Source of the DNA: Adineta vaga
Taxonomy: Eukaryota > Animalia > Rotifera
NCBI GenBank assembly: GCA_021613535.1
Contig: CP075496.1
Location: 7,440,001 to 7,504,000 of the forward strand
Reading direction: 5' to 3'
Length of the DNA stretch: 64,000 nt
The position numbers were made by a program, and so were the translations under genes. Positions 8,935-39,666 of the stretch are shown in pieces. The notes under the pieces were generated by a model that had not been told where the DNA came from, made no database searches, and was given only the letters and a program-made list of their open reading frames with translations. Within the stretch, counting starts at the first letter, position 1, and each line of letters starts with the position of its first letter.

Positions 8935-11900
8935 GCACATCTTTGAACTATCTATTACTAGAAAATGAGAGATTATGTGTCGTGCTTTACTGTTACTTTC
9001 TTTGTTAGTATCAACGCCTTGAGAAGAAAAAAGAGAAAAAGAAGAAAAGACGGCAAAATGTTCTCTCTTCTATTCTTTCCTTCATGCTTTTCTCTCATCT
9101 TGGCATCAGTCTTTATCGTTAATACTTATACTTTCTAACCATTACTATCATTATCATAGAATATTATTTCTCTAAAAAAAACACACATATATATATATCA
9201 TAACTACCAGATATATCTTGAAGTAAGTTATTTATTAAATAGAGTTGTTAAGGCTCATTGACATTCTATCTGTTATTTAAGAGGAAAAAACGTGAGATAT
9301 AAGAATATTAGAAAAAGGGCAAACAACAAATCATTATATCTATAGAATTGTTTCCCTACTTGATTGTTAATATTTAAAGAGAAAGGAAAATGTGCGAGAA
9401 GTATAGAAATTGAAGATAATTTATAGAGCGATGAAATTAAGTAGCCAATAGAATGACAATGGTATTATTATATATTCTATATGGAAATGGTCTGCTTTCT
9501 TAAAATGTTAAGAAAGTGCGTACTTGACGCGGATATTTGTTTGAGATTGAATCTATAATGGACGTTATAGTTTCTTGTCAATGGCAGCTGAATTGAATAG
9601 GTTAATGTTTAGCTAGAAATATACATACATATAAATATATAGGTTATAGTTTCTGTTAATCTTGTCATATATGTATGGACGTCTGGCGGATGTCATTCGA
9701 GCGCGTGCTAACATGTCAACAAATCAATCTATCATTAGAGTAGAAAAAAAAGCAGCAATCGAAGAGATTTTTTTTTGATGTGTTGATTTTATTGTTTAGA
9801 TGGTCCAACATGTGCACATAAAGTTCAATCTTCACATCAAATTTTTACTGGAATTCATCGACCTATAAACTTAACTTGTTTTATGAATGATGCCAATCCA
9901 TCGAAATTAAATTTTACTTGGATTTTACCCAATGGAAATACTCGTTTAGGACATCATTTAAATCAAACTTCTAATTATATAACAGTCATACCAAATCAGA
10001 TCGAAGATTTTGGACAAGCAACTTGTCGAGCACAAAACGAATTAGATTTATTTGCCGAGTGTCATATTAATATGATAATGGGAGGTATAAATTGTTCATT
10101 AATATATTGGCTTCTTTTTTTTATATCACAAAAGAAAATCTTTTGAATTTATAATTTTAGGCATACCTGACCCGATAAAATCATGTGGTTATACATATGT
10201 TAATGCTACTTTAACAGTCAATTGTGTTGCAGGATTTCATCAAGGTGATGAAGATTTCTTTTGTTATATGTATAAACGACAAGATAACGGTGAATTTTCT
10301 GAACATGCACGATTGAAAGGTAAGATAGTAAGTTATATGAAAAGATAGCAAAGCTTTTTTTTCACAGCCAATTGTGCATTTATTCTTCCTGATCTCAAAC
10401 CTGAACTACACCATGATTTTCGTGTATTTACACAGAATAAATTTGGTAGTAATATGGATCGAAGCTATTCTATTACAGTTGGAAGACCAAAAGGTAATGA
10501 TCAATATAATTAATTAATAAACAAACACTTCGATTATTGAATTCTCTTTCGTTATTTAGCTGAATCACTTATTGATAAAACTCGAACTTATTGGCCATAT
10601 ATGGCTATTTGTGTTATTGGCGCATGTCTTGTTTCATTATTAATTATTTGTTGTTGTTGTCATCAGATACGTCGATCATTATATAAAAGAAAAACGAAAG
10701 GCAATTTTGACAGTAAGTGATTAATGAATAACTATTAGTGATTGATTATATCAATTTTATAGGTCTAACTTATCAAAATCATAGTCCAAATACACATATG
10801 AATTCAAATGGCAAACATTCATTAGGTAAAGAAAGATCTTTCATTTTATGTTACGATTGAAGATGTTCCTTTCGTGCCTCAAGGAATAATAAAGGATCCT
10901 TAACGGAATATGAACTATATGACAGAAAGGGTATTATTGTTATTCGGAATCATTGAGAATTGATCTGGATAAATCTTATGATAAAATCATGCATGCATAA
11001 TAAGACTTGTATTATAAATCTTCTGTCTTTCACTCATCTCCGTTTCTTTCTTTTTTTTTGTGTCTAAAGAAAATCAATAACTCATTTGTTTCCGTATAAC
11101 TCATAAATCAACATGAATGTCTATCAAGAACGATAAAGACCTTGTTGATTGATATATCGACATTTGTGTAGGCTCGTGTTTGACTTAATGGAATATCACT
11201 TCATCTTGCCTTTTTTTCCTTCTTTTCTAGTACATTTAAAACAGAATGGCAATGGAACAGCTTATCCCGTCCGTCCCTATCGTTCAAAAGATTATTTAAT
11301 CTCGACAGATATATCTACTTCACAACGTAGTAATCCTCCAAATCGAGGTATTTATACGCCTGAAGATGAATGCTCGTCTCCAAGACGAAATACTTTAAAG
11401 GAAACTGATCTTGATCAATTAATTGGTTCCTCAAATACAACTGGTTCATCTGCAACAGCAACAATTAAAACATTACCACTAAATCGAACACGTCCACTAT
11501 TTGCCGCTTTCTCTCCCCACGATCAACTACAACAACAGCAACAACAACAACTGCAACAGCATTTACAACGCGATGAAACTAATCACAATCCATTAACAAT
11601 TCAACGTCGTTCAAGTTTTCAAACTGCGACGAAATTAAATAGTTTAGATTTCTATACCGCACAAGAACCCTTCTATTTACTCGATCGACAGATGATGAAG
11701 GTCAATCAACGAAATAGTTATTCACCTGAACGTGATCTTCGAGCACGCGAACACTATCGTGAAATTCGTCGTGAATATTCACCGTATTCGAAAGACGAAA
11801 ATTTACTTGATATTCATCGACAAACTCTATTAGACGTCGATCGTACACGAGAAAATAGTTTGATTGTAGAAAATCACATGTTAATGAAAGGTGAAGACGT

Positions 11901-12177
11901 TAGTCGAGCGAGTTCAATGGCTGATCAACATTGGCGTGAAATGAACGCTATTGATGAAATTGATTATCATGATCGTTATATGGATTCAAATGAAGTTGAT
12001 GTCGAACATTTTCAAGATAATTCCGACGATAATCATCAATTTATTTCAAATGATGATGATCGAGATCGACGAAGTCTTGATCGAATATCTGTTGATTATC
12101 GACGTGATGATGATACAACTATTGCTAATTATGATCGCGATGATGATCGTTATCGTGATGATGGTATTTTTGTGTGA
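3735..12177 (+). CDS. Single-pass Ig-superfamily receptor (3 Ig + FN3-like + TM + long acidic cytoplasmic tail), Sidestep/nephrin-like
   Basis: In-frame GT-AG exons ~3735-4116, 7286-7744, 9800-10084, 10161-10319, 10368-10493, 10560-10712, 10763-10825, 11231-12177. Signal peptide; Ig motifs (LTC..VAWW..DSGTYECE; ITCVVSRALPAA; YGPTC..NLTC..FTW..GQATCRAQN); FN3-like GIPDPIKSC..VNCVAGF..FRVFTQNKFG; TM YMAICVIGACLVSLLIICCCC. Confidence 0.85.
6128..6149. repeat. (ATCG)n self-complementary microsatellite
   Basis: Directly visible, intronic. Confidence 0.85.
8052..8078. repeat. (GAT)9 microsatellite
   Basis: Directly visible, intronic. Confidence 0.9.
8893..8927. repeat. (TG)n microsatellite
   Basis: Directly visible, intronic. 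Confidence 0.9.
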
Positions 12178-14332
12178 TTTAATCTTTATTTCGATTCTTC
12201 TATTTGTAAAAAAAAGAGAAACAAACAAAAGAGCTCTTTGTCTTTTTCTATATGTTGTTTGTTTGTTTGTTTGATTGTTTCTATCGTGCGCAAGTTCTTT
12301 TTTTTATATAAATGCATTCAAATGTAATAAGTATATACATAAAAAACGTTTTTCTACTTCTACAGATTCCTTTAATAGAGAAAAAGAAACTAATAAATCA
12401 ATCATTGATAAAGATATTTCTTTAATTTGAATAGACGATTTTCAATAGGAAATGAGATAGAGTCAAGTAATCTTAGTTTTCTTTTGTTTGTCTATAGAAG
12501 AAAAAAGGGAGTTGTATTTGTAACAACAATATAGTTATGATACATAACCTTCCCCGGAAAAAACTAATTAGACAAACAATCGAATATCCATTAATCTTGT
12601 TGGTTTTTTCTAATTATACAATAAAGATTCTAATTAAATCTATATGAAAAGCTATTAACAAATCATCAAACCAGATTTATTATACTATCCTAGTAGAATA
12701 ATATTATTGTCACAACCAAAAGCATATTTCAAGATTACAACACTTTCCTGAGTAATGACAAAATGGTTTTTTCTTCTGCTATTGACTCGTCAGAGTTGAT
12801 ATTGACAACAAAGAAGACAATTATTGGAATCTCTCGTATATATATATATATATTCACAACGAATTGAAATCAAATCAGATACGTCAAGTTTCGTAGAATT
12901 TAGAAAGTGATTCTATTCCGCAAGGGAAATCTGATATAACTAACATATTGATTATTTATACAAAACGGATTACACTGAATTTGATGTGGATGAAAAACTA
13001 ATTTCTCATTTTGACGATTTAGAATAAAATAGGTTCAAAGACGAGAAGTTAACATTACTCATTATGACAACTTTAAATGACTACTTGAGATTTTTAACAA
13101 ACAGATTGTTTTCCAATGACGTAGATGTTACCATTTTTCAAGTAAAATTTTGTTTTCTTTTAAAAGGGCAACTTGTTCAGATTTATACTCGAACTTTTTA
13201 ATTGATTATTTACCATTTGTGTCTTGAACGTGAATTATTAATTGAGATAAACACGATTAACAGAGTGCAAAAGTCTTCTGTTAGTTCATCGTCACAATAT
13301 CTTTCAAAAATCAATTGATGTAAACCAGATAGATCATAGATTGTGTACTTTTTCAAAACATGTTTGATCCATTCATGACATACAGCCTGTTATTTTGTAT
13401 TATTATTGAATCTTTTTTACTTTTCGATTTGTTTTTATTTGTACATTTGAGTCAGATCTTCAGTTGCTTTGTGTGCTAAAGAATGTATCAAAAGTTCGTC
13501 ATGAAATTTCATCATTTGCACTGCAAATAATCCTCTTTCGAAAGCATGAAGCCGAAAATCTCAATTAAAAAACGAATAAATATTTTTTTTGTGCGTTCTA
13601 TTCAAACTTCATTGGAATATGCATAAAAATTGTCATTGACACATATCAGTATCTGAAACTAATTTTTTTCTTCTAGTCAGCTGCCAAAAGAAGACTTTTC
13701 AAGTTCGAATTGCTTTATTTCAATGTAAACGAATGAAACCTTTAAAATCGAGACTTTTCTTTCTTTTTCTTACTTTGTATGAAACTAACACCCGAATATT
13801 TGGAATTAGAATTGATTTGCTCTGTTTTTCTCTGTATCTAAACGACTAATTCTAATCTTGGTCATATTTTCAATCGGAGAATTTTAATTGGAAGAAAACA
13901 TATTTTGTTTTACTATTGTTGTCAAGTTTTAATATAATCCAATCGAACATAAAAAAAATATTTTTGCATAGTTGTTTTCAATTATTTCAGCATAACTAAG
14001 TTTTTTAAAGCACGCAGCGACCATTTTGCGTTGCTAAATAGACACGCACATACTTAAATTCACATTATCGAGAATTCTTTTTTTCTTTGTGTATGTGTTG
14101 GAAGCGAATACAGAAAAAAAACGAACGAGAAGGTAGGCAGAAAGAGGGAGGGAGAGAGCGACAGAGAAAAAATAGAAAGAGAGAGAGAGAAAGAAAAAAG
14201 TCATCGATAAAAAAAATTGAACAATGATATTATCGTTTAGATTCGATTGAAGTAACAAGAAAGAAACAATTCAAAGAGAACTTGTCAAACTTTCTTGAAT
14301 AACATACTTTTTTCAAATAACAAATCATCAAT

Positions 14333-14919
14333 ATGAGTCGTGCACCGTAAGTTATTGAAGAGATATTTTCGACTTTTTATTAGTTCATTGTCATTTAGAA
14401 ATCATTCATCTCATCCATCTGTTGTTAAACAACAATACGATACACAAAACGTATGGAACTTCGAAAACCAATGGCGTTCGGAATTATTCAGTTGTAAACC
14501 GTGTAGTCAATGTGAGTTTTCATAATTTTTCAAGAACAATTTGATTATTTCGAAAGTTTTTAGTCTGTTTTGCTTGTTGTTGTCCATGTATTTTTGGATG
14601 TAAATTGGCTAAACGCATGGGAGAATCATCTATCATTGGTTGCTGTCCTGGTTCAATATCCTATTTTCGAACAAAACTTCGAACAGCAAGACGTATTGAA
14701 GTCCGTATTTCTATCTTTTGAAAAAAGAAGATTTTATGCATTTTTCTTCTATTTTGATAGGGTTCATGCTGCGGTGATTATTGGGCAACAAGTTGTTGCG
14801 GTGCATGCGTGGCAAATCAAATCGCAAATGAACTTGATTCACAAGGTTTATGGGAAACACGAGGAACACGAAAAACTCATCCACGAAATGATCGTTCCTA
14901 TCATGGTGACACCTATTAA
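14333..14919 (+). CDS. PLAC8/cornifelin-family Cys-rich protein, copy A (4 exons)
   Basis: Spliced product MSRAP..NQWRSELFSCKPCSQFCFACCCPCIFGCKLAKRMGE..RTKLRTARRIEGSCCGDYWATSCCGACVANQIANELD, matching PLAC8 motifs (W..L..C, CCPC, R..R....I.G..C.D, C...Q...EL). Confidence 0.85.
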
Positions 14920-15532
14920 AACCTACAAAAGAAAACTCTTTTCAACTTTTAAACCTTTCGAGTTCATTTTATTCAACAAATGTCTGTATAATCATATACA
15001 AATATGAATAAAAACATAATAAACTCAAACATACGCATATACATATACATATACATAGAAATATTATTTTTCATTTTTGTTTCTTGATCGAAAGTCAAAA
15101 TTGTGAAATATGATCTGATTGTTTGTAGCTATAATTATTCCATTGAAATCTTTCCATAGTAACAAAAGTTGCGTTTTTTTACTCATGTTAATACGAAGAC
15201 AAAGACATGACAAAAATAAAAATGCGTATTTTTCATGCTTTTGTGCAGAATTGTGTTGCTAAAACAAACAGATTCGAACAATTTTTTTTCACTCCATCTT
15301 TCTTTTTCTCAGTCAATTTCAGTTATTTTCTTTTTGTTTCTTTCTGATGCACTATTCTCTTACCTGAAGTTGTTCGATTAAAACAGTTAAACGATTGTGT
15401 ATGTTACTACCTTGACGACAATTTTGCCTGCGTTCATTGAGTGATTGATTGGAAGAAGTGTCATTCATTCAAAGAATACGAATCAGTTCATCGGGTTTTA
15501 AGTAAACTAATATTGAATACACCTGAGTAAAC

Positions 15533-31370: not shown

Positions 31371-32149
31371 ATGTCGCTAAGTTTAGCAGCGAATGTTGAA
31401 TATGATCATTTATTTAAAATAGTCATTATTGGTGATAGTGGAGTAGGGTATGCATTCTTTTCGTATCTCTATCGAGTTCTGTTTTATATAAAGTTGATTT
31501 TGTCTAGGAAAACTTCGATTCTACAACGATTTGCTACTGAACATTTCTCAGATGATTACGTTGCAACAATAGGTGTAGGTAAGAGTAACTTTTCTAAATT
31601 CATATTCTATATATAAAAGATATCATGTTCATGAAAATAGATTTTCATATCCGAACAATTGATATCGATGGTAAACGTTGTAAATTACAAGTATGGGATA
31701 CAGCTGGTCAAGATCGTTTCAGATGTGTTGTATCAACATTTTATCGTGGGGCACACGGTGCAATGATCTGTTTTGATATGACTGATAAAGAGAGTTTTTA
31801 TAATGTCGATTGTTGGCTTGAAGCACTTGAGAGATCTCAACCTAATGATATACCGATGCTTCTTATTGGAACAAAATGTGATTTACAATTTAAACGTGTA
31901 ATATCATATTCAACAGCCAAGGCATATGCAGATAAAAGACAAATGACCTATATTGAAACGAGCTCAAAAGCAAATGAAAATATTCAAAACTGTTTTTTTG
32001 ATTTTACCCGAACAATATTAATACACAACAATCAGATGAAGATCGATGACAAAGATGGATCAAAATCAAAAATTAAAGTTGATTTAAATGATCAAACAAA
32101 ACCAATAACAAGTGGAGGATGTATGACAGGATATAACTGTATCATTTAA
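31371..32149 (+). CDS. Rab-family GTPase (Rab1/Rab8-like, divergent)
   Basis: YDHLFKIVIIGDSGVGKT, TIGVDF, KLQVWDTAGQDRFR, IGTKCDL, ETSSK; 2 introns; ends GGCMTGYNCII. Confidence 0.92.
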
Positions 32150-32611
32150 ACTCTTTTCATCAGTTGTATTTATACATATGAACATTAGTTTATCAACTAT
32201 TTCTATGACTTCTCTATGCGTAATCATCGAGAACGATAAGACGTTTTTTTTCCATTGTATTGAAAATAAATGACTTGTTCATTTTTTTTGTCTGATTTTA
32301 ATTTTTATTATTACGAATATTCAACATTTACTAAAGCAATATAATGTAATACGTTAAGTAAAAAAAACTGTTTTCACAATCAGCGATTGGACGATATAGA
32401 GAAAAGAAGTGCAAATTAATTGGAATGATTAGTAGATAAAAGTAGATGAGGGTATAGAAAAAGACTAATTTTCATTGAGAACAATTAGGACGGTTAAAAG
32501 CGAGAAAATAATCTTTCACCTATCTAAATGTCGAAAATACACACGTTTCGTCGTATCACAGAAAATCTACTTCGATGACTGTAATATACTGTTAGAAAAA
32601 AAAAGAAACTA

Positions 32612-34233
32612 TTAAACGATTGATTTCGTTGCAAAATTATTCGATGTTGATGATAAATAATTTCCGTCATCATGAAATTTCAAATAGGGTAAAGTGAACC
32701 AACCCCATTGTTCGTCTGGCCAAACATGTAGCACAAGATTTGCTTGAGGATGTTGATATTTTATAAGTAAATATGCACAGACAACGATAGCTTCGTTACT
32801 ACTAAATATAATTAATACATGCCAAAAAGAATGTAAATAAGGAAAAGAAATGGAAAGCCAAAATGAACAAAACATTCGATCACATATCCATATTGTCACA
32901 GCAACGGCCCACATACCCAAACAATGAATACCAAGATTTTTAATATGACGATTATCACACCTGAAAACATAAAGTTAATTTAAATGGAAATAGATGTTAT
33001 ATTTACCTTGAAAGATGTATAGCTAGAAATGCAATCGAAGGTAAACCAAGAATCATTAAAGCAAATGCATTAGCATATGGGTAAATAATAGAAAGGCAAG
33101 TAATGACAATCGTCAATACAATACAACTATAGATAAACTGATGTCTAAATGAAATATAGAACTAAATATCATTTAAAATAATCATTAGTTTCATTTATAT
33201 CATGCATATCATAATTAGCCATTCCGAATCATTCATTATGCTAGCTAATCTTACTGTCGAGGACGATAGCGTATACCCCACGTATATAAAACTCTGTAAT
33301 ATGTTCATTTAATTCTTATATCATCGAATTCTTAGAATAGAATAGAGAAAAGAGAATTTACCGTTGTGCACGAAGTGACTGTGGAAAATAAGTAGCTGGT
33401 AAAAATAATGCATAACCTGCCATCAGTACCCATAAGATAGATATTTCATCAACTAGTTGTCCAGCCTAAGAAAATAACGACACAACAGCAAAATATGAGT
33501 AATTCAATGTTATATTTTCACTTACAAGACTAAGTGTTGCATGAAAATAGACAGAACCAATACCAATAATAATCAATAAAATCCAAAGAATTGCAATTCC
33601 ATTTGCTGTTCGTTTAGAATAAGATGCAAAAAGTATAATCATCATCGGTGGAACCAAAAAGAAGAATATATTGGATACCTTGAAGATAAAAAAGTATATC
33701 ATTAAACATATTGGGATAATTGCACAAGTCTACAAACAAGTAAACGCATACATTTGCGATCTAAGAAAATTCTTATTTCTATCTAGCACTAATTAATTAT
33801 CAATAGCAAGCAAAAAATTGGAAAAAAAACGAATGATCATGCAATTAACAAATGTAATAAATAGCATTCCCGAAATGAAGGAAAGAAAAAGGAATGTTGA
33901 AAAGTTACCTTTGATCCACACATTTACAATGTTAGCCTGCAATACAAACTATAGTAAGTAATCAATTCAGCAGAGTTATTTCAAACTAATTCATTCCAAA
34001 AGACAAGTAAAAGAGAAGATATTTCATACAGCCAATAAGAACATGTAAAAATATTCTAACTTGATTGAAAAGAAAATACGTACTGTATTCCAAAATTCAC
34101 TAATATATGCACTAACAGCATAATTAGGTTCACACCAATCAACTTTGCTGGAACCAATTCGAAATGGACTGTCATTGATATTCTTATCAATACTATTCAA
34201 AGGAATGTTGTCTAATTTTGATGAGATATACAT
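32612..34233 (-). CDS. ACER: Alkaline ceramidase (ACER1/2-like)
   Basis: SSKVDWCEPNY, EFWNTVSN, GIGSVYFHATLS..GQLVDE, WICDR.FC, PYLHSFWH (CREST Zn-binding His residues). Confidence 0.93.
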
Positions 34234-34395
34234 TCTTATCTAGAAATATATATGTTCGATTTTAATTATTCATGTTCAAACAAGAATACATATGTATCTA
34301 TGCATATATGAAGAGAGAGAGAGAAAAAAATATCTGACTTATTTACATCGAATAAGAAGGTTATATATACATCAATTGGACTGAAATTACTTATT

Positions 34396-37240
34396 TTACT
34401 GAGAAAGAACAAGAGTTGAAAGTGTATCAAGATTTTGTTTATCAGATGAATAACGTCGATTTGTATTATTCGATAAATATTCTTCTGATTTGGATAATAG
34501 ATATGTTGGTGGTTGTTCAGGAATAAGTGATGTACGATTATCAATTGTGGATATAGATTTCAAAAGTGTTAATTGCGAATCACCAAAGATCCATTCTGAT
34601 GATCGACATAAACGTTTAGAAGTATTTTCATTCGTATAATCACGACGATTTTCATCATTTTCTGATACGGTTCGTTTTCGACTACCGAATGGTTTTATTT
34701 TCGAAGCAGATAGATTTGATAGAGAAGATTTTCGTCGATTGATTGATGATAGAGAACGTACGGGTGATGAAATTGTATGAAAAATAGATGAAAGAATTGT
34801 TTTACGATTTGTTAAACCATATTGACGATGTCGAACAAGTGTCGCAATATTATGGGAATGATTCGTTGTTGGAAATGTATTGGGTAACGAACATGTTGAT
34901 GTAGAAATTTCATTATCAAACGATAATGACCAAAGACGAACTTGAAAATCATCGGAACATGTGATAAACTATGAAACAGACAACAAATGAAAAATTTTAT
35001 CCTGTAAAACATATAAATTCGTACCGAAAATGGATTCGTTGGATGATAAGCAACGGCAGTTACTTCTTCGCAACTATGTTCAATTTTGATCGGTTCGATA
35101 GATGGTTGATTAATCTAAATAGATAGATTTGCTGATCTATATTCATTCTTAACTTATATTTTCGCGTATGTATAGCAATTATCACGCAGTATATTTGAAA
35201 TTATATTCAAATTTTCCAACAAAAACTTACTCGATAAATGTATGAGGCAAAATCACTCGATCCTGTTAGTAAAAGTTGATCATATGGACTAATTGCTATT
35301 TTAATATTAAAAGAACCAACACGATGACCGGTATAGGATGAAATTTTTGATTTCGTTGAATAAGAATTTTCATGAAGATCAAATTGATAAATTTTACTAT
35401 TTGTACAATTAGCAAAAAGTGTCGTACGATTCGAATCCATTTTCATATCCGAAAAACCAGCAAGACGATTGATTGATTTCACATCATCAATCGGTACACA
35501 AAACATACGTTTTGGTTTTGGCATATGATTTGTATTTAAACGTGAATAAGTATATCGAAGATCCCACACTTTGAGTGCACTAATTCAACATTAATAGAAG
35601 ATATGGAGAAATATAAATGTTTACAAAAAGGATTTTTTTTGTTTACCTATCAGCACACGCACATGAATATAGATTATATTCATCTTGAAATTCAACAGCA
35701 GTCACACTACGTGTATCTTTCTATAGGAGAAAAAACAATCATTCTCTTTCTTATTGAATAACTTTAGAAATAGAATTATATATTGTCATTATTTACTCGT
35801 GCTGATTTTTGTAATGCTGTGGAACTTATATGAGCACAAACAATAGAACTAATTGGATATAATGCTCCTTCTAGCGAAAAGAAAAATGACGATGATTGAA
35901 GTCTCACGTAGAAAATAATCGATTAATTACGTTTTTTTGAATAACGTCGATCATAAATATTAATGATAGAATCTCGACCACCTGTCGCTAGCACGTCTAA
36001 ACATGATGTTAATATTAATTTTTGCTTGTTAAATTTCAATTAACCTACGTGTACTATAATGTAATTTACTAACACTTCGAACACTCATTGTATGGCCACG
36101 CAATAAATCAATTTCAGCACCTGTTTCAATATCATAAATTACTGTTATTTGATCACCTGATGTTGCACATAATAATCGATCGCTTATCCAAGCAATAGCA
36201 AAGATACATTGAGAATGACAAGTAAATTCTAAATGAAAATGGATATAAAAAATACTCGTATTTTAAAGTTTTTTTCAGTCTTTTCTTCGAAATATCATGT
36301 GAATTATGAAAGAAAAATTAGATAATGTATGCGATTAGAAACATATAGGAAGCAAATAAGCATGCTTGAAATTTTATTCATCATACCTTTCACGAGTTTT
36401 AGAGTATCATTATAAGTTGAATAGAGATGAATTTTACCATTATCATAACTGATTGCACATATATCATGATCTATGAAATTCAAAAGCAAAGACTTCGAAT
36501 GATATGGGTTTTATATTAGTATGTAAATAATAACATTCTTCAACATTTAAAACTAAAAATAATACCATATTATCTATTGTTCTTTCGACTTAGAAAAAAT
36601 AGAAGAGCATCCTAGAAAATACTCGATCATAAGTGATAATTCGAATTCTTTTTTCTTCTAGTAATTAAAAAATAAAAATACATTCTATATAACTATTATC
36701 ACACGACAAAGGATTTCTTTTGACATACGATTCTTCTTTTTCTAGTATCCGTTAATACACGTCCTTCGTAAACGGATCGTATCAAGATTTGTATGATCAT
36801 TAAACCTTAATAGTAAAAATCTTTTTTCTCTACATCTAGCAAATGTATCTCTTTCCTCACGAACTAACTTTTAATAAATTCCTTATATAAAATAATGCTT
36901 AAGAAGATTAGTTGTCTACTGCAAAGTTCTCTTTAAAATATTTTATCAATGTAGAGAGCGAATCACTACAATAGATGCCTGAATAAAAATATATATCCTA
37001 AAGAAGTAAAGGCATATTCCTGAATTTCTGGTTAGATTTAACTAGAAAACAAAGAACCGGAAAGTTAATATTTTACTTGGATGATAAGCACATGCACATG
37101 GTACTCGTTGATACTAGAAAAGTGAAATAAAACGAATCAGCTTCAAAAAGAAGTGGTACAGTTACACTTACATTTGCTTCGTAATCAATATAAGTATCTG
37201 TTCCCACTTCCTGTATTTTTAATTTTCGATAATTAGCCAT
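34396..37240 (-). CDS. DTL: Denticleless/Cdt2 WD40 protein (CRL4 substrate receptor)
   Basis: Spliced WD40 repeats: ICAISYDNGKIHLY, HSQCIFAIAW..TSGDQ, GHTMSVRSV, LATGGRDS, SVTAVEFQDE, LKVWDLR, LLLTGSSD, TCSDDFQVRLW; start MANYRKLKIQEVG inferred. Confidence 0.8.
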
Positions 37241-37515
37241 GAAATCATTAAAAAAGAGAATCTTGATTAATCTAAATGGAAAGTTTTATTTTCATTGGTT
37301 TTGCTTCTAGTAATAATATAATCGATCAATTGACTGTATATATGTATGCGTGTCTTTTTTTGTTGGTTTATTTATTTTTTAAATCTCAATCCCATTTATT
37401 GTCTAGATGATAATACAAAACAAAACTATAAAAACAATGCTTATCTATTGTTCTTATTTTGTTATATTAAATAGGATTGATCGGAGATATTTTTCTTTTG
37501 CTTGTCGATCTGTTC

Positions 37516-37977
37516 TTATTGAAAACCAGCTCGTCGAGCATAACCACCTTGTTGTCGGTCACCATGTGAACGTTGATTACCATGACCTTGTTGATTTTGT
37601 TGATCATTTGCTTCTTGAACATCAACATTTTGTAATGATTTAAAGTCAAATGCATTCAACATATCCTTTGTATCTTGATCAATGGCAATCATTGTGGATG
37701 GTTCAAGTGCAGAAACTTCAGGAACATAGTTATCTCGTCGTTCACGTTCTTCTTCTTGAAGTTTAATTGAGATACCACGTACAGGTCCAGCTTGAATACG
37801 TTTCATTAAATGTGTAATAAAACCAGCAATTTGATTACGAAGACGTTTTGTTGGAATAATAGCAATTTCTTCCACAACACGTTTGTTGGTATGAAAATCG
37901 AGCGTCAATTTTGTATAATATTTTTCAATAATTTGACGCGATGCCTTTTTAATGGTTTTTGTACGAACGCGACCCAT
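37516..37977 (-). CDS. RPS17: 40S ribosomal protein S17 (eS17), intronless CDS
   Basis: [49 protein letters not shown]. Confidence 0.99.
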
Positions 37978-38111
37978 TTTGTTTTCAAATGATGTTAGAG
38001 AAAAACAATCAGATGATCTGAAAAAGAAAAGGAAAAAATCAGGATATTTTTATTTACAGAAGAATATATAAAATGCAGAAGACGTATTATATTCGTAATT
38101 TATAAATAAAT

Positions 38112-38480
38112 TTAAGAAGATTTAGGGTCACCAACAATTAATTTAACTTTAGGTTGCCGATTTTCAGGTTTCGCTGCATAGTCAGATTCAGTATGATATC
38201 GACAATGTGAACAATTATCAAATTCATCGACTTCAGTTGTTTTCTCATTGTCCAATTCAGGGTTATGTGGTTTGGTGTAAATACAACAACATTTGGATTT
38301 TTTCTTATTCATGAATTCGTTATCAATTGTTCCTTCAGTCCAATGTACACGGGCACCAGTATCAGTTGGACGATGTAGTTCAAGAATAAGAGCAGGAGAA
38401 TGTGCTCTAACTGGTTGATCTGTTTCAGTTGTAGTAATTGTAGTAGTACCAGAATCGTTGGTTTCTGCTGCCATTGCCAT
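38112..38480 (-). CDS. PPP1R11: Protein phosphatase 1 inhibitor-3 (PPP1R11/Ypi1)
   Basis: RVHW PP1-docking motif followed by [18 protein letters not shown]. Confidence 0.93.
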
Positions 38481-39093
38481 TTAATGGCTACAATACGATC
38501 AGAAAAAACGTTTATATCTGAAAGTAAAAAATAAATTAATAGAGATAGCCATCTTTTTAAGCGCGAATTTGAATTGATATATATATGTATGTTTACTTTT
38601 ATCTGTATTCGCAATCGTTTTATGATCGATACGTGATATGATATAACAATAAAAATATCGATGGGTATTCGTTGATGATGCATAAAAATGATCTGATAAC
38701 CGTTTAACATACATATATATTACTTTCTTCTATTCGCGAATTCGTGAATACAAAGAAAATAAACCGATTTAATTATGTTAATTTTCATGAAATGTTATGA
38801 GAAAAAAAAACTTCTAATAAATAAGTGTAAATTCTTATTTTAATAATGCCATCTAGTTATCCATTACATATCTATCAATCCTCGCTTTACCACCACTCTT
38901 TATTTCATCCGTCCTCTCTTTCATAATTTTATTTATTTTATATCACTAGTGACCTCTATTGAACATAGAGAGTATCGATGATGGTTGTATCTAAGGAATC
39001 GAACATGTCGGATGTACTTTCATCACACTATAATTCTTATTATTAAGTAAAATCGATAGTTAATCCACTGTCTATTCACTATTTATTGAATGC

Positions 39094-39666
39094 ATGGGTC
39101 TACTTGATTCATTAATCGAATGGCTCGGTTTTGGTCGACGTGAAGTTAATGTTCTCGTAGTAGGTTTAGATAATAGTGGTAAATCTTCACTTCTAAATTA
39201 TCTTCGACCACGAGACACTCAATCAGAATTCATTGCACCAACAGTAGGTTTTAATGTTGAACAGTTTACATGTAAAGGATTATCATTTAATGCTTTTGAT
39301 ATGAGTGGACAAAGTCGATATAGAACATTATGGGGAAATTATTATCGTACAACGAATGGAATCATATTTGTGGTTGATAGTGCAGATAAAACACGTGTTC
39401 TTGTTGCTCGAGAAGAACTTCAACAGTTACTTTCACATTCCGATATATCATCACGAAATATTCCAATCTTATTCTTTGCAAATAAAATGGATATACGTGA
39501 TGCATTATCCGATGTTGGTGTATCATCGGCATTAGGTCTTGATGGAATTAATAATAAATCTTGGCATATATGTTCCAGTAATGCACTTACAGGTGAAGGT
39601 GTAAGCGATGGTATTGGATGGTTAAGTTCAGCGATTAAAACTTCACTTGAACAAGCCCGGCGATGA
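39094..39666 (+). CDS. ARL6: ADP-ribosylation factor-like 6 (BBS3), intronless
   Basis: MGLLD, GLDNSGKS, PTVGF, FDMSGQSRYRTLW, IPILFFANKMD, WHICSSNALTGEG. Confidence 0.93.
   Translation: MGLLDSLIEWLGFGRREVNVLVVGLDNSGKSSLLNYLRPRDTQSEFIAPTVGFNVEQFTCKGLSFNAFDMSGQSRYRTLWGNYYRTTNGIIFVVDSADKTRVLVAREELQQLLSHSDISSRNIPILFFANKMDIRDALSDVGVSSALGLDGINNKSWHICSSNALTGEGVSDGIGWLSSAIKTSLEQARR

Follow-up and report, generated by a model that had tools for sequence, protein, structure and literature searches.

Operons whose polycistronic transcripts are resolved by spliced leader (SL) trans-splicing are known in nematodes, tunicates, flatworms and chaetognaths. In the tunicates Ciona and Oikopleura they join unrelated housekeeping genes with very short 5′ untranslated regions (UTRs), a single SL family is used, and the spacer is very short or absent, with the acceptor at the end of the upstream message. 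In Caenorhabditis elegans, the SL1-type operons have a poly(A) signal that abuts the acceptor, and the SL2-type operons have a spacer of about 100 nt. In the chaetognath Paraspadella gotoi, 18% of genes belong to SL-resolved operons, which were recognised from gaps of <250 bp together with SL reads and include ribosomal protein genes (PMC12460157). Rotifers are named in that work only in a general sentence on the patchy distribution of trans-splicing and operons, and a methods paper of 2021 states that operons are not reported in rotifers (PMC7986045). No later report of bdelloid or rotifer operons was found in the literature searched; trans-splicing is reported. Here we describe a gene cluster in a 64,000 nt stretch, referred to as the window, of the bdelloid rotifer Adineta vaga (assembly GCA_021613535.1, contig CP075496.1, positions 7,440,001 to 7,504,000), in which PPP1R11, RPS17, DTL and ACER follow one another on the minus strand (Table 1). 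Sequence comparison establishes a conserved, compact cluster of genes with putative SL acceptors. Whether it is transcribed, at least partly, as one polycistronic precursor resolved by the SL is an evenly balanced question, for which we infer a single promoter, read-through and SL addition at DTL and ACER.

The cluster region (window positions 32400-38800) was read on the minus strand with its open reading frames (ORFs) listed, and DTL and ACER, which are spliced genes, were searched exon by exon. The four gene names given in an earlier note on this DNA are supported by Pfam matches and, for DTL, by the A. ricciae ortholog, whose top solved-structure match is the human Denticleless protein (E 5e-19), with other WD40 proteins seven orders of magnitude behind. 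The closest relatives of RPS17 and PPP1R11 are those of Adineta ricciae, A. steineri, Rotaria and Didymodactylos. The ATGs, stops, hexamers and AG acceptors were also found where the note had placed them, and the stop-to-ATG gaps are 134 bp between PPP1R11 and RPS17 (junction 1), 275 bp between RPS17 and DTL (junction 2) and 162 bp between DTL and ACER (junction 3). Four co-oriented genes separated by short gaps, with opposite-strand genes on both flanks, have the layout of an operon.

By analogy, this layout appears closest to that of the tunicate single-SL operons, which it resembles in combining unrelated housekeeping genes, one SL family and very short 5′UTRs and, at junctions 1 and 3, in having little or no spacer and an acceptor at the end of the upstream message. 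It differs in the junction 2 spacer of ∼100 nt, and in that co-transcription is here a possible reading of the layout. The SL1-type layout that had been proposed for the whole cluster is recognisable at junction 1, where AATAAA lies 29 nt before the acceptor, and possibly at junction 3, with an A/T-rich hexamer at a distance of 19 nt. It does not extend to junction 2, which lacks the abutting arrangement in most bdelloid species, the conserved poly(A) signals being 94-122 nt before the acceptor, and which in this respect is more like the SL2-type operons. Unlike those operons, junction 2 has no U-rich element that was identified; SL exon variants do exist in the A. vaga genome. We know of no SL1/SL2 division in bdelloids. 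The operons of P. gotoi, a gnathiferan relative, likewise include ribosomal protein genes, but they were mapped with SL reads, whereas here only one junction has indirect, RNA-like support, from other species.

The bdelloid SL exon is the 23-nt sequence GCTTATTACAACTTACCAAGAG (PMC3795323), and trans-splicing affects more than 50% of bdelloid mRNAs (PMC1925144). The A. vaga genome (100.8 Mb in six contigs) contains 58 copies of the SL exon followed by a GT donor and none of a reversed-pattern control. Together with the published statement, these copies confirm that SL trans-splicing occurs in bdelloids, as the earlier note had stated. The genes that carry them are ∼105 nt long and have a conserved upstream box. 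The SL RNA genes often occur as divergent pairs ∼156 bp apart (C1:2551158-2551338 and many other places; loci L001-L006), and the variant exons TTAAAACTT, CAAATTACC and ACGAAGAG are found beside the major one.

Comparison across rotifers, proposed previously as a check, shows the same four-gene order in A. ricciae, where the gaps are 127, 261 and 164 bp, and, with similar gaps, in four assemblies of Rotaria magnacalcarata. The three YAG/AT acceptors (Y is a pyrimidine and the slash marks the splice site) are kept in both species. A. vaga chromosomes 1, 2 and 3 are homoeologous to chromosomes 4, 5 and 6 (PMC8494291), and an ohnologous cluster is located on chromosome 1 (C1:5704083-5706657, L024). 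There, PPP1R11 and RPS17 are 127 bp apart and ACER, which has its own acceptor, follows 256 bp after RPS17, without DTL. In the A. vaga genome DTL has a single copy. As PPP1R11, RPS17 and ACER are arranged in this way on an unrelated contig from an environmental bdelloid (L029) as well, this arrangement must be old and has kept a tight gap and an acceptor of its own.

Junction 1 was compared across the two A. vaga ohnologs, A. ricciae, R. magnacalcarata and four or five loci from environmental bdelloids. The sole conserved part of the gap is YAG/ATYATCTCRTTGTTTTT, which comprises the acceptor and the RPS17 leader (eight to nine loci), and YAG is present at the acceptor in all nine genomic loci. 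Over the rest of the gap mean column identity is 44%, and an alignment of eight loci reveals no promoter element conserved upstream of the acceptor. An A-rich hexamer 25-45 nt upstream of the acceptor is kept only loosely across the other loci. As a genome-wide motif the RPS17 leader had 56 matches against 27 for a control, and is not a general element. A cis-spliced intron in the 5′UTR, using a GTAAAT that overlaps the AATAAA of junction 1, was considered and rejected, as the donor is not conserved and the RNA-like contigs described next begin at the acceptor or carry CAAGAG.

RNA-like evidence for use of the RPS17 acceptor comes from bdelloid relatives of A. vaga. A complete RPS17 coding sequence was found in eight short ENA contigs from one assembly series (ERZ22157xxx and ERZ22158287; 509-717 nt). 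In seven of the eight, the first base lies between -6 and +3 nt relative to the homolog of base 38017, and none of the eight reaches into the upstream pyrimidine tract. Two start with CAAGAG/ATTATCTCG, where CAAGAG corresponds to the last six bases at the 3′ end of the SL. All genomic loci, including the closely related L026, have YAG at the place of CAAGAG. We take the contigs to be RNA-derived and the RPS17 mRNA to be trans-spliced at this acceptor in related bdelloids, although only six SL bases are visible. Contigs L011 and L012 continue past the proximal poly(A) signals as far as the position homologous to the distal AATAAA, ending shortly before the DTL acceptor. A poly(A) tail on L012, which ends in ...ATGAAAAAA where L011 has ...ATGAAATAAAC, was not called, six A's being too few.

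That RPS17 is the only one of the four genes recovered as RNA-like contigs (none was found for the PPP1R11 3′ end, DTL or ACER among the relatives' contigs), and that its leader is unusually conserved, would fit a mixed arrangement. Some pairs, for example DTL and ACER or PPP1R11 and RPS17, would then be co-transcribed, with RPS17 also expressed from an internal promoter, as in the hybrid operons of C. elegans. Four R. magnacalcarata assemblies (L020-L023, about 10731-15388), in which a single fused gene model of 799-834 aa covers DTL and ACER, would also be in keeping with this. However, junction 1 has no conserved element that could represent the internal promoter, and fused gene models may be artefacts; the Rotaria fusion is probably a prediction error arising from the tiny gap and the unpaired acceptor. 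A mixed arrangement is considered improbable.

In junction 2, the AATAAA that abuts the DTL acceptor in A. vaga is found elsewhere only in the species of contig L011, and the signals shared with other bdelloids are the two proximal ones, which leave ∼95-120 nt before the acceptor. The putative DTL acceptor and leader (YATTTAG/ATT...TTTTTTAATGA) are conserved in A. ricciae, L017 and Rotaria. In A. vaga, the ATG within TTTTTTAATGA opens a short out-of-frame upstream ORF in the leader (window 37241-37262, minus strand), and in A. ricciae a small deletion turns this ATG into the annotated start. Metagenome contigs searched for the SL tail joined to the conserved DTL leader gave 50 matches, and these were dismissed as chance since none had SL upstream or DTL downstream. 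In junction 3, the sequence ATATATTTCTAG/ATA at the putative ACER acceptor does not differ between A. vaga, A. ricciae and Rotaria, and the gap is 75% identical throughout between Adineta and Rotaria. The pyrimidine tract of the ACER acceptor is weak and fails a stricter acceptor rule. Matches to the last DTL exon, searched for spliced RNA contigs continuing into ACER, were exon-sized ORFs or annotated genome fragments and not RNA.

It had been cautioned that such motifs arise easily by chance in AT-rich DNA, and the count against shuffled gaps suggested at that time has now been made. A hexamer with a pyrimidine-rich AG 5-45 nt downstream, the AG being no more than 60 nt from the end of the gap, occurs in 1.5-4% of dinucleotide shuffles per gap and in 2% of random window segments. 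If the motifs were chance matches and the gene order accidental, this background and the lack of conservation of the junction 2 and junction 3 hexamers would be accounted for. However, the three junction acceptors, like that of the first gene, have been retained across bdelloid families and in both ohnologs, and in related species the RPS17 acceptor serves as the start of the mRNA, and a chance origin is already disfavoured and very improbable. The acceptors are judged to be real because they are conserved, which is a stronger argument than the motif statistics. The claim that each gap carries a poly(A) hexamer and then a pyrimidine-rich acceptor is upheld for the acceptors, but has to be relaxed for the ACER pyrimidine tract and for the hexamers of junctions 2 and 3. 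Nor is a poly(A) signal found within ∼30 nt of the acceptor at every junction, and only non-canonical, variable hexamers are present at junction 3.

An operon is favoured because junction 1 has no conserved element, because there is almost no space at junctions 1 and 3, where the last hexamer is no more than ∼30 nt from the acceptor, and because the spacing remained tight in the ohnolog after the loss of DTL. At least partial co-transcription is slightly favoured on these grounds, and a full four-gene operon is a little short of an even chance. The earlier note's polycistronic unit is consistent with the layout, the SL genes and the conserved order and acceptors, but no RNA crossing any junction was obtained among the contigs of related bdelloids. 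The contigs recovered for PPP1R11 and RPS17 (L017 and L026-L030, from Logan and other ENA assemblies) were rejected as evidence for co-transcription, as they include promoter regions or opposite-strand genes and look like DNA. Since both genes are intronless, RNA and DNA could not be told apart in a contig that spans them.

The genes could instead be separate transcription units, each with its own small promoter in the 3′UTR or coding end of the gene upstream and a short outron removed by ordinary SL trans-splicing. The three features that favour an operon, junction 1 being represented by eight loci, speak against this arrangement, which is a serious possibility though one that we doubt on balance. 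Besides the absence of junction-spanning RNA, several observations weigh against an operon and in favour of separate units. The acceptor of PPP1R11, the first gene, is arranged like those of the others, with YAG/AT 24-45 nt before the ATG in all nine bdelloid loci compared. As the first gene also has one, an acceptor before the ATG is a general feature of trans-spliced bdelloid genes and not a mark of downstream operon genes, and the same follows from the trans-splicing of over half of bdelloid mRNAs (PMC1925144). Gene-order conservation is not specific to the cluster either, because the flanking TRAPPC8, Arf, Ras-like, DUF4149 and dehydrogenase genes, which are differently oriented, show equal synteny between Adineta and Rotaria. 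In annotated relatives, the same-strand gaps found elsewhere measure 394-1781 bp, only ∼2-5 times more than those of the cluster. In Didymodactylos, PPP1R11 and RPS17 are ∼480 bp apart, and neither DTL nor ACER was found within 2.8 kb after RPS17. Small promoters could be hidden in the conserved junction 3 gap and in the junction 2 spacer. A ribosomal protein gene also usually needs a far higher output than the gene for a PP1 inhibitor. The 2021 statement that rotifer operons are unreported (PMC7986045) is likewise in line with separate units.

If the cluster is an operon, its promoter would lie in the divergent region of 613 bp and be shared with the Arf gene. The precursor would be processed into single mRNAs, with each upstream message cleaved and polyadenylated and the 23-nt SL joined to the YAG/AT acceptor located 6-40 nt ahead of each ATG. 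In other animals, DTL is known as a classical target of E2F. Only three TTSSCGC sites (S is C or G) are present in the window, one of them the E2F-like TTCGCGC in the divergent region, and none is located in the gap between RPS17 and DTL.

The RPS17 3′UTR contains a conserved domain with a predicted fold, which is present in at least seven bdelloid loci and in both ohnolog types. It has a 13-bp closing stem, UCAAUCCUAUUUA / UAAAUGGGAUUGA, the 3′ arm of which overlaps the AAUAAA form of the first proximal poly(A) signal. The stem includes one compensatory pair between ohnolog types, CCU:GGG or AGG versus CCC:GGG. The modelled domain may be an autoregulatory element or one that influences poly(A)-site choice. 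A broader proposal is that bdelloids have true SL-resolved operons, that this cluster is one of them and is transcribed from the divergent promoter, which contains the E2F-like site, and that the stem over the RPS17 poly(A) signal sets the balance between processing and read-through into DTL and ACER. This combination is speculative and unlikely to hold in full.

If this cluster and similar loci are co-transcribed, Rotifera would be added to the phyla known to have operons. This would inform the question of whether operons emerge in every lineage with SL trans-splicing, as well as the understanding of gene regulation in an animal that is anciently asexual and tolerates desiccation, and would matter for gene prediction, as DTL and ACER have already been fused in Rotaria annotations. 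The locus alone is no proof of rotifer operons, but it supplies exact sites for testing.

Table 1. Features of the PPP1R11, RPS17, DTL and ACER cluster and its borders, in window coordinates and in the order of minus-strand transcription.
Feature	Position	Strand	Details
Arf-family GTPase gene, divergent upstream neighbour	39094..39666	plus	Pfam Arf, E 4e-50; same neighbour in Rotaria and contigs L017 and L028
Divergent intergenic region, 613 bp	38481..39093		Sole long promoter-sized space adjoining the cluster
E2F-like TTCGCGC	38561-38567	minus	42 nt upstream of PPP1R11 acceptor; kept in A. ricciae
Candidate SL acceptor AG of PPP1R11 (CTTTCAG/ATATAAAC)	38518..38519	minus	37 nt before ATG
PPP1R11 (Ypi1-type PP1 inhibitor)	ATG 38480, stop 38112-38114	minus	Single exon, 122 aa; Pfam PPI_Ypi1, E 1e-18
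AATAAA, likely PPP1R11 poly(A) signal	38049..38054	minus	Ends 29 nt before RPS17 acceptor AG
RPS17 acceptor AG (TTTTCAG/ATCATCTGATTGTTTTTCTCT)	38018..38019	minus	40-nt 5′UTR, 37978-38017
RPS17 (ribosomal protein eS17)	ATG 37977, stop 37516-37518	minus	Single exon, 153 aa; Pfam Ribosomal_S17e, E 3e-60
Conserved structured domain of RPS17 3′UTR, ∼100 nt	37381..37483	minus	Predicted fold, z-scores -4.5 to -7.0; no Rfam match
Conserved poly(A) signal AATAAA (first proximal)	37395-37400	minus	Overlapped by closing stem of RPS17 3′UTR domain
Two overlapping AATAAA hexamers (second proximal poly(A) signal)	37367..37376	minus	Kept in A. ricciae, L017 and Rotaria
Distal AATAAA	37285..37290	minus	11 nt before DTL acceptor; not conserved in A. 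ricciae, L017 or Rotaria
DTL acceptor AG (TTTCCATTTAG/ATTAATCAAG...TTTTTTAATGA)	37272..37273	minus	5′UTR, 37241-37271
DTL/CDT2-like WD40 gene	ATG 37240, stop 34396-34398	minus	Multi-exon
ATTAAA	34261..34266	minus	19 nt before ACER acceptor; AATAAT or ATTAAT there in other species
ACER acceptor AG (ATATATTTCTAG/ATAAGA)	34240..34241	minus	5′UTR only 6 nt
ACER (alkaline ceramidase)	ATG 34233, stop 32612	minus	Multi-exon; Pfam Ceramidase on three exons
Ras/Rab-family small GTPase gene, convergent downstream neighbour	31371..32149	plus	Same neighbour in A. ricciae and Rotaria

Rfam and tRNA scans of the window gave no matches. The first intron of DTL (window 36472-37170, minus strand) is ∼700 bp and seems long compared with other introns in the window; it does not align with its counterpart in A. 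ricciae, which is shorter.

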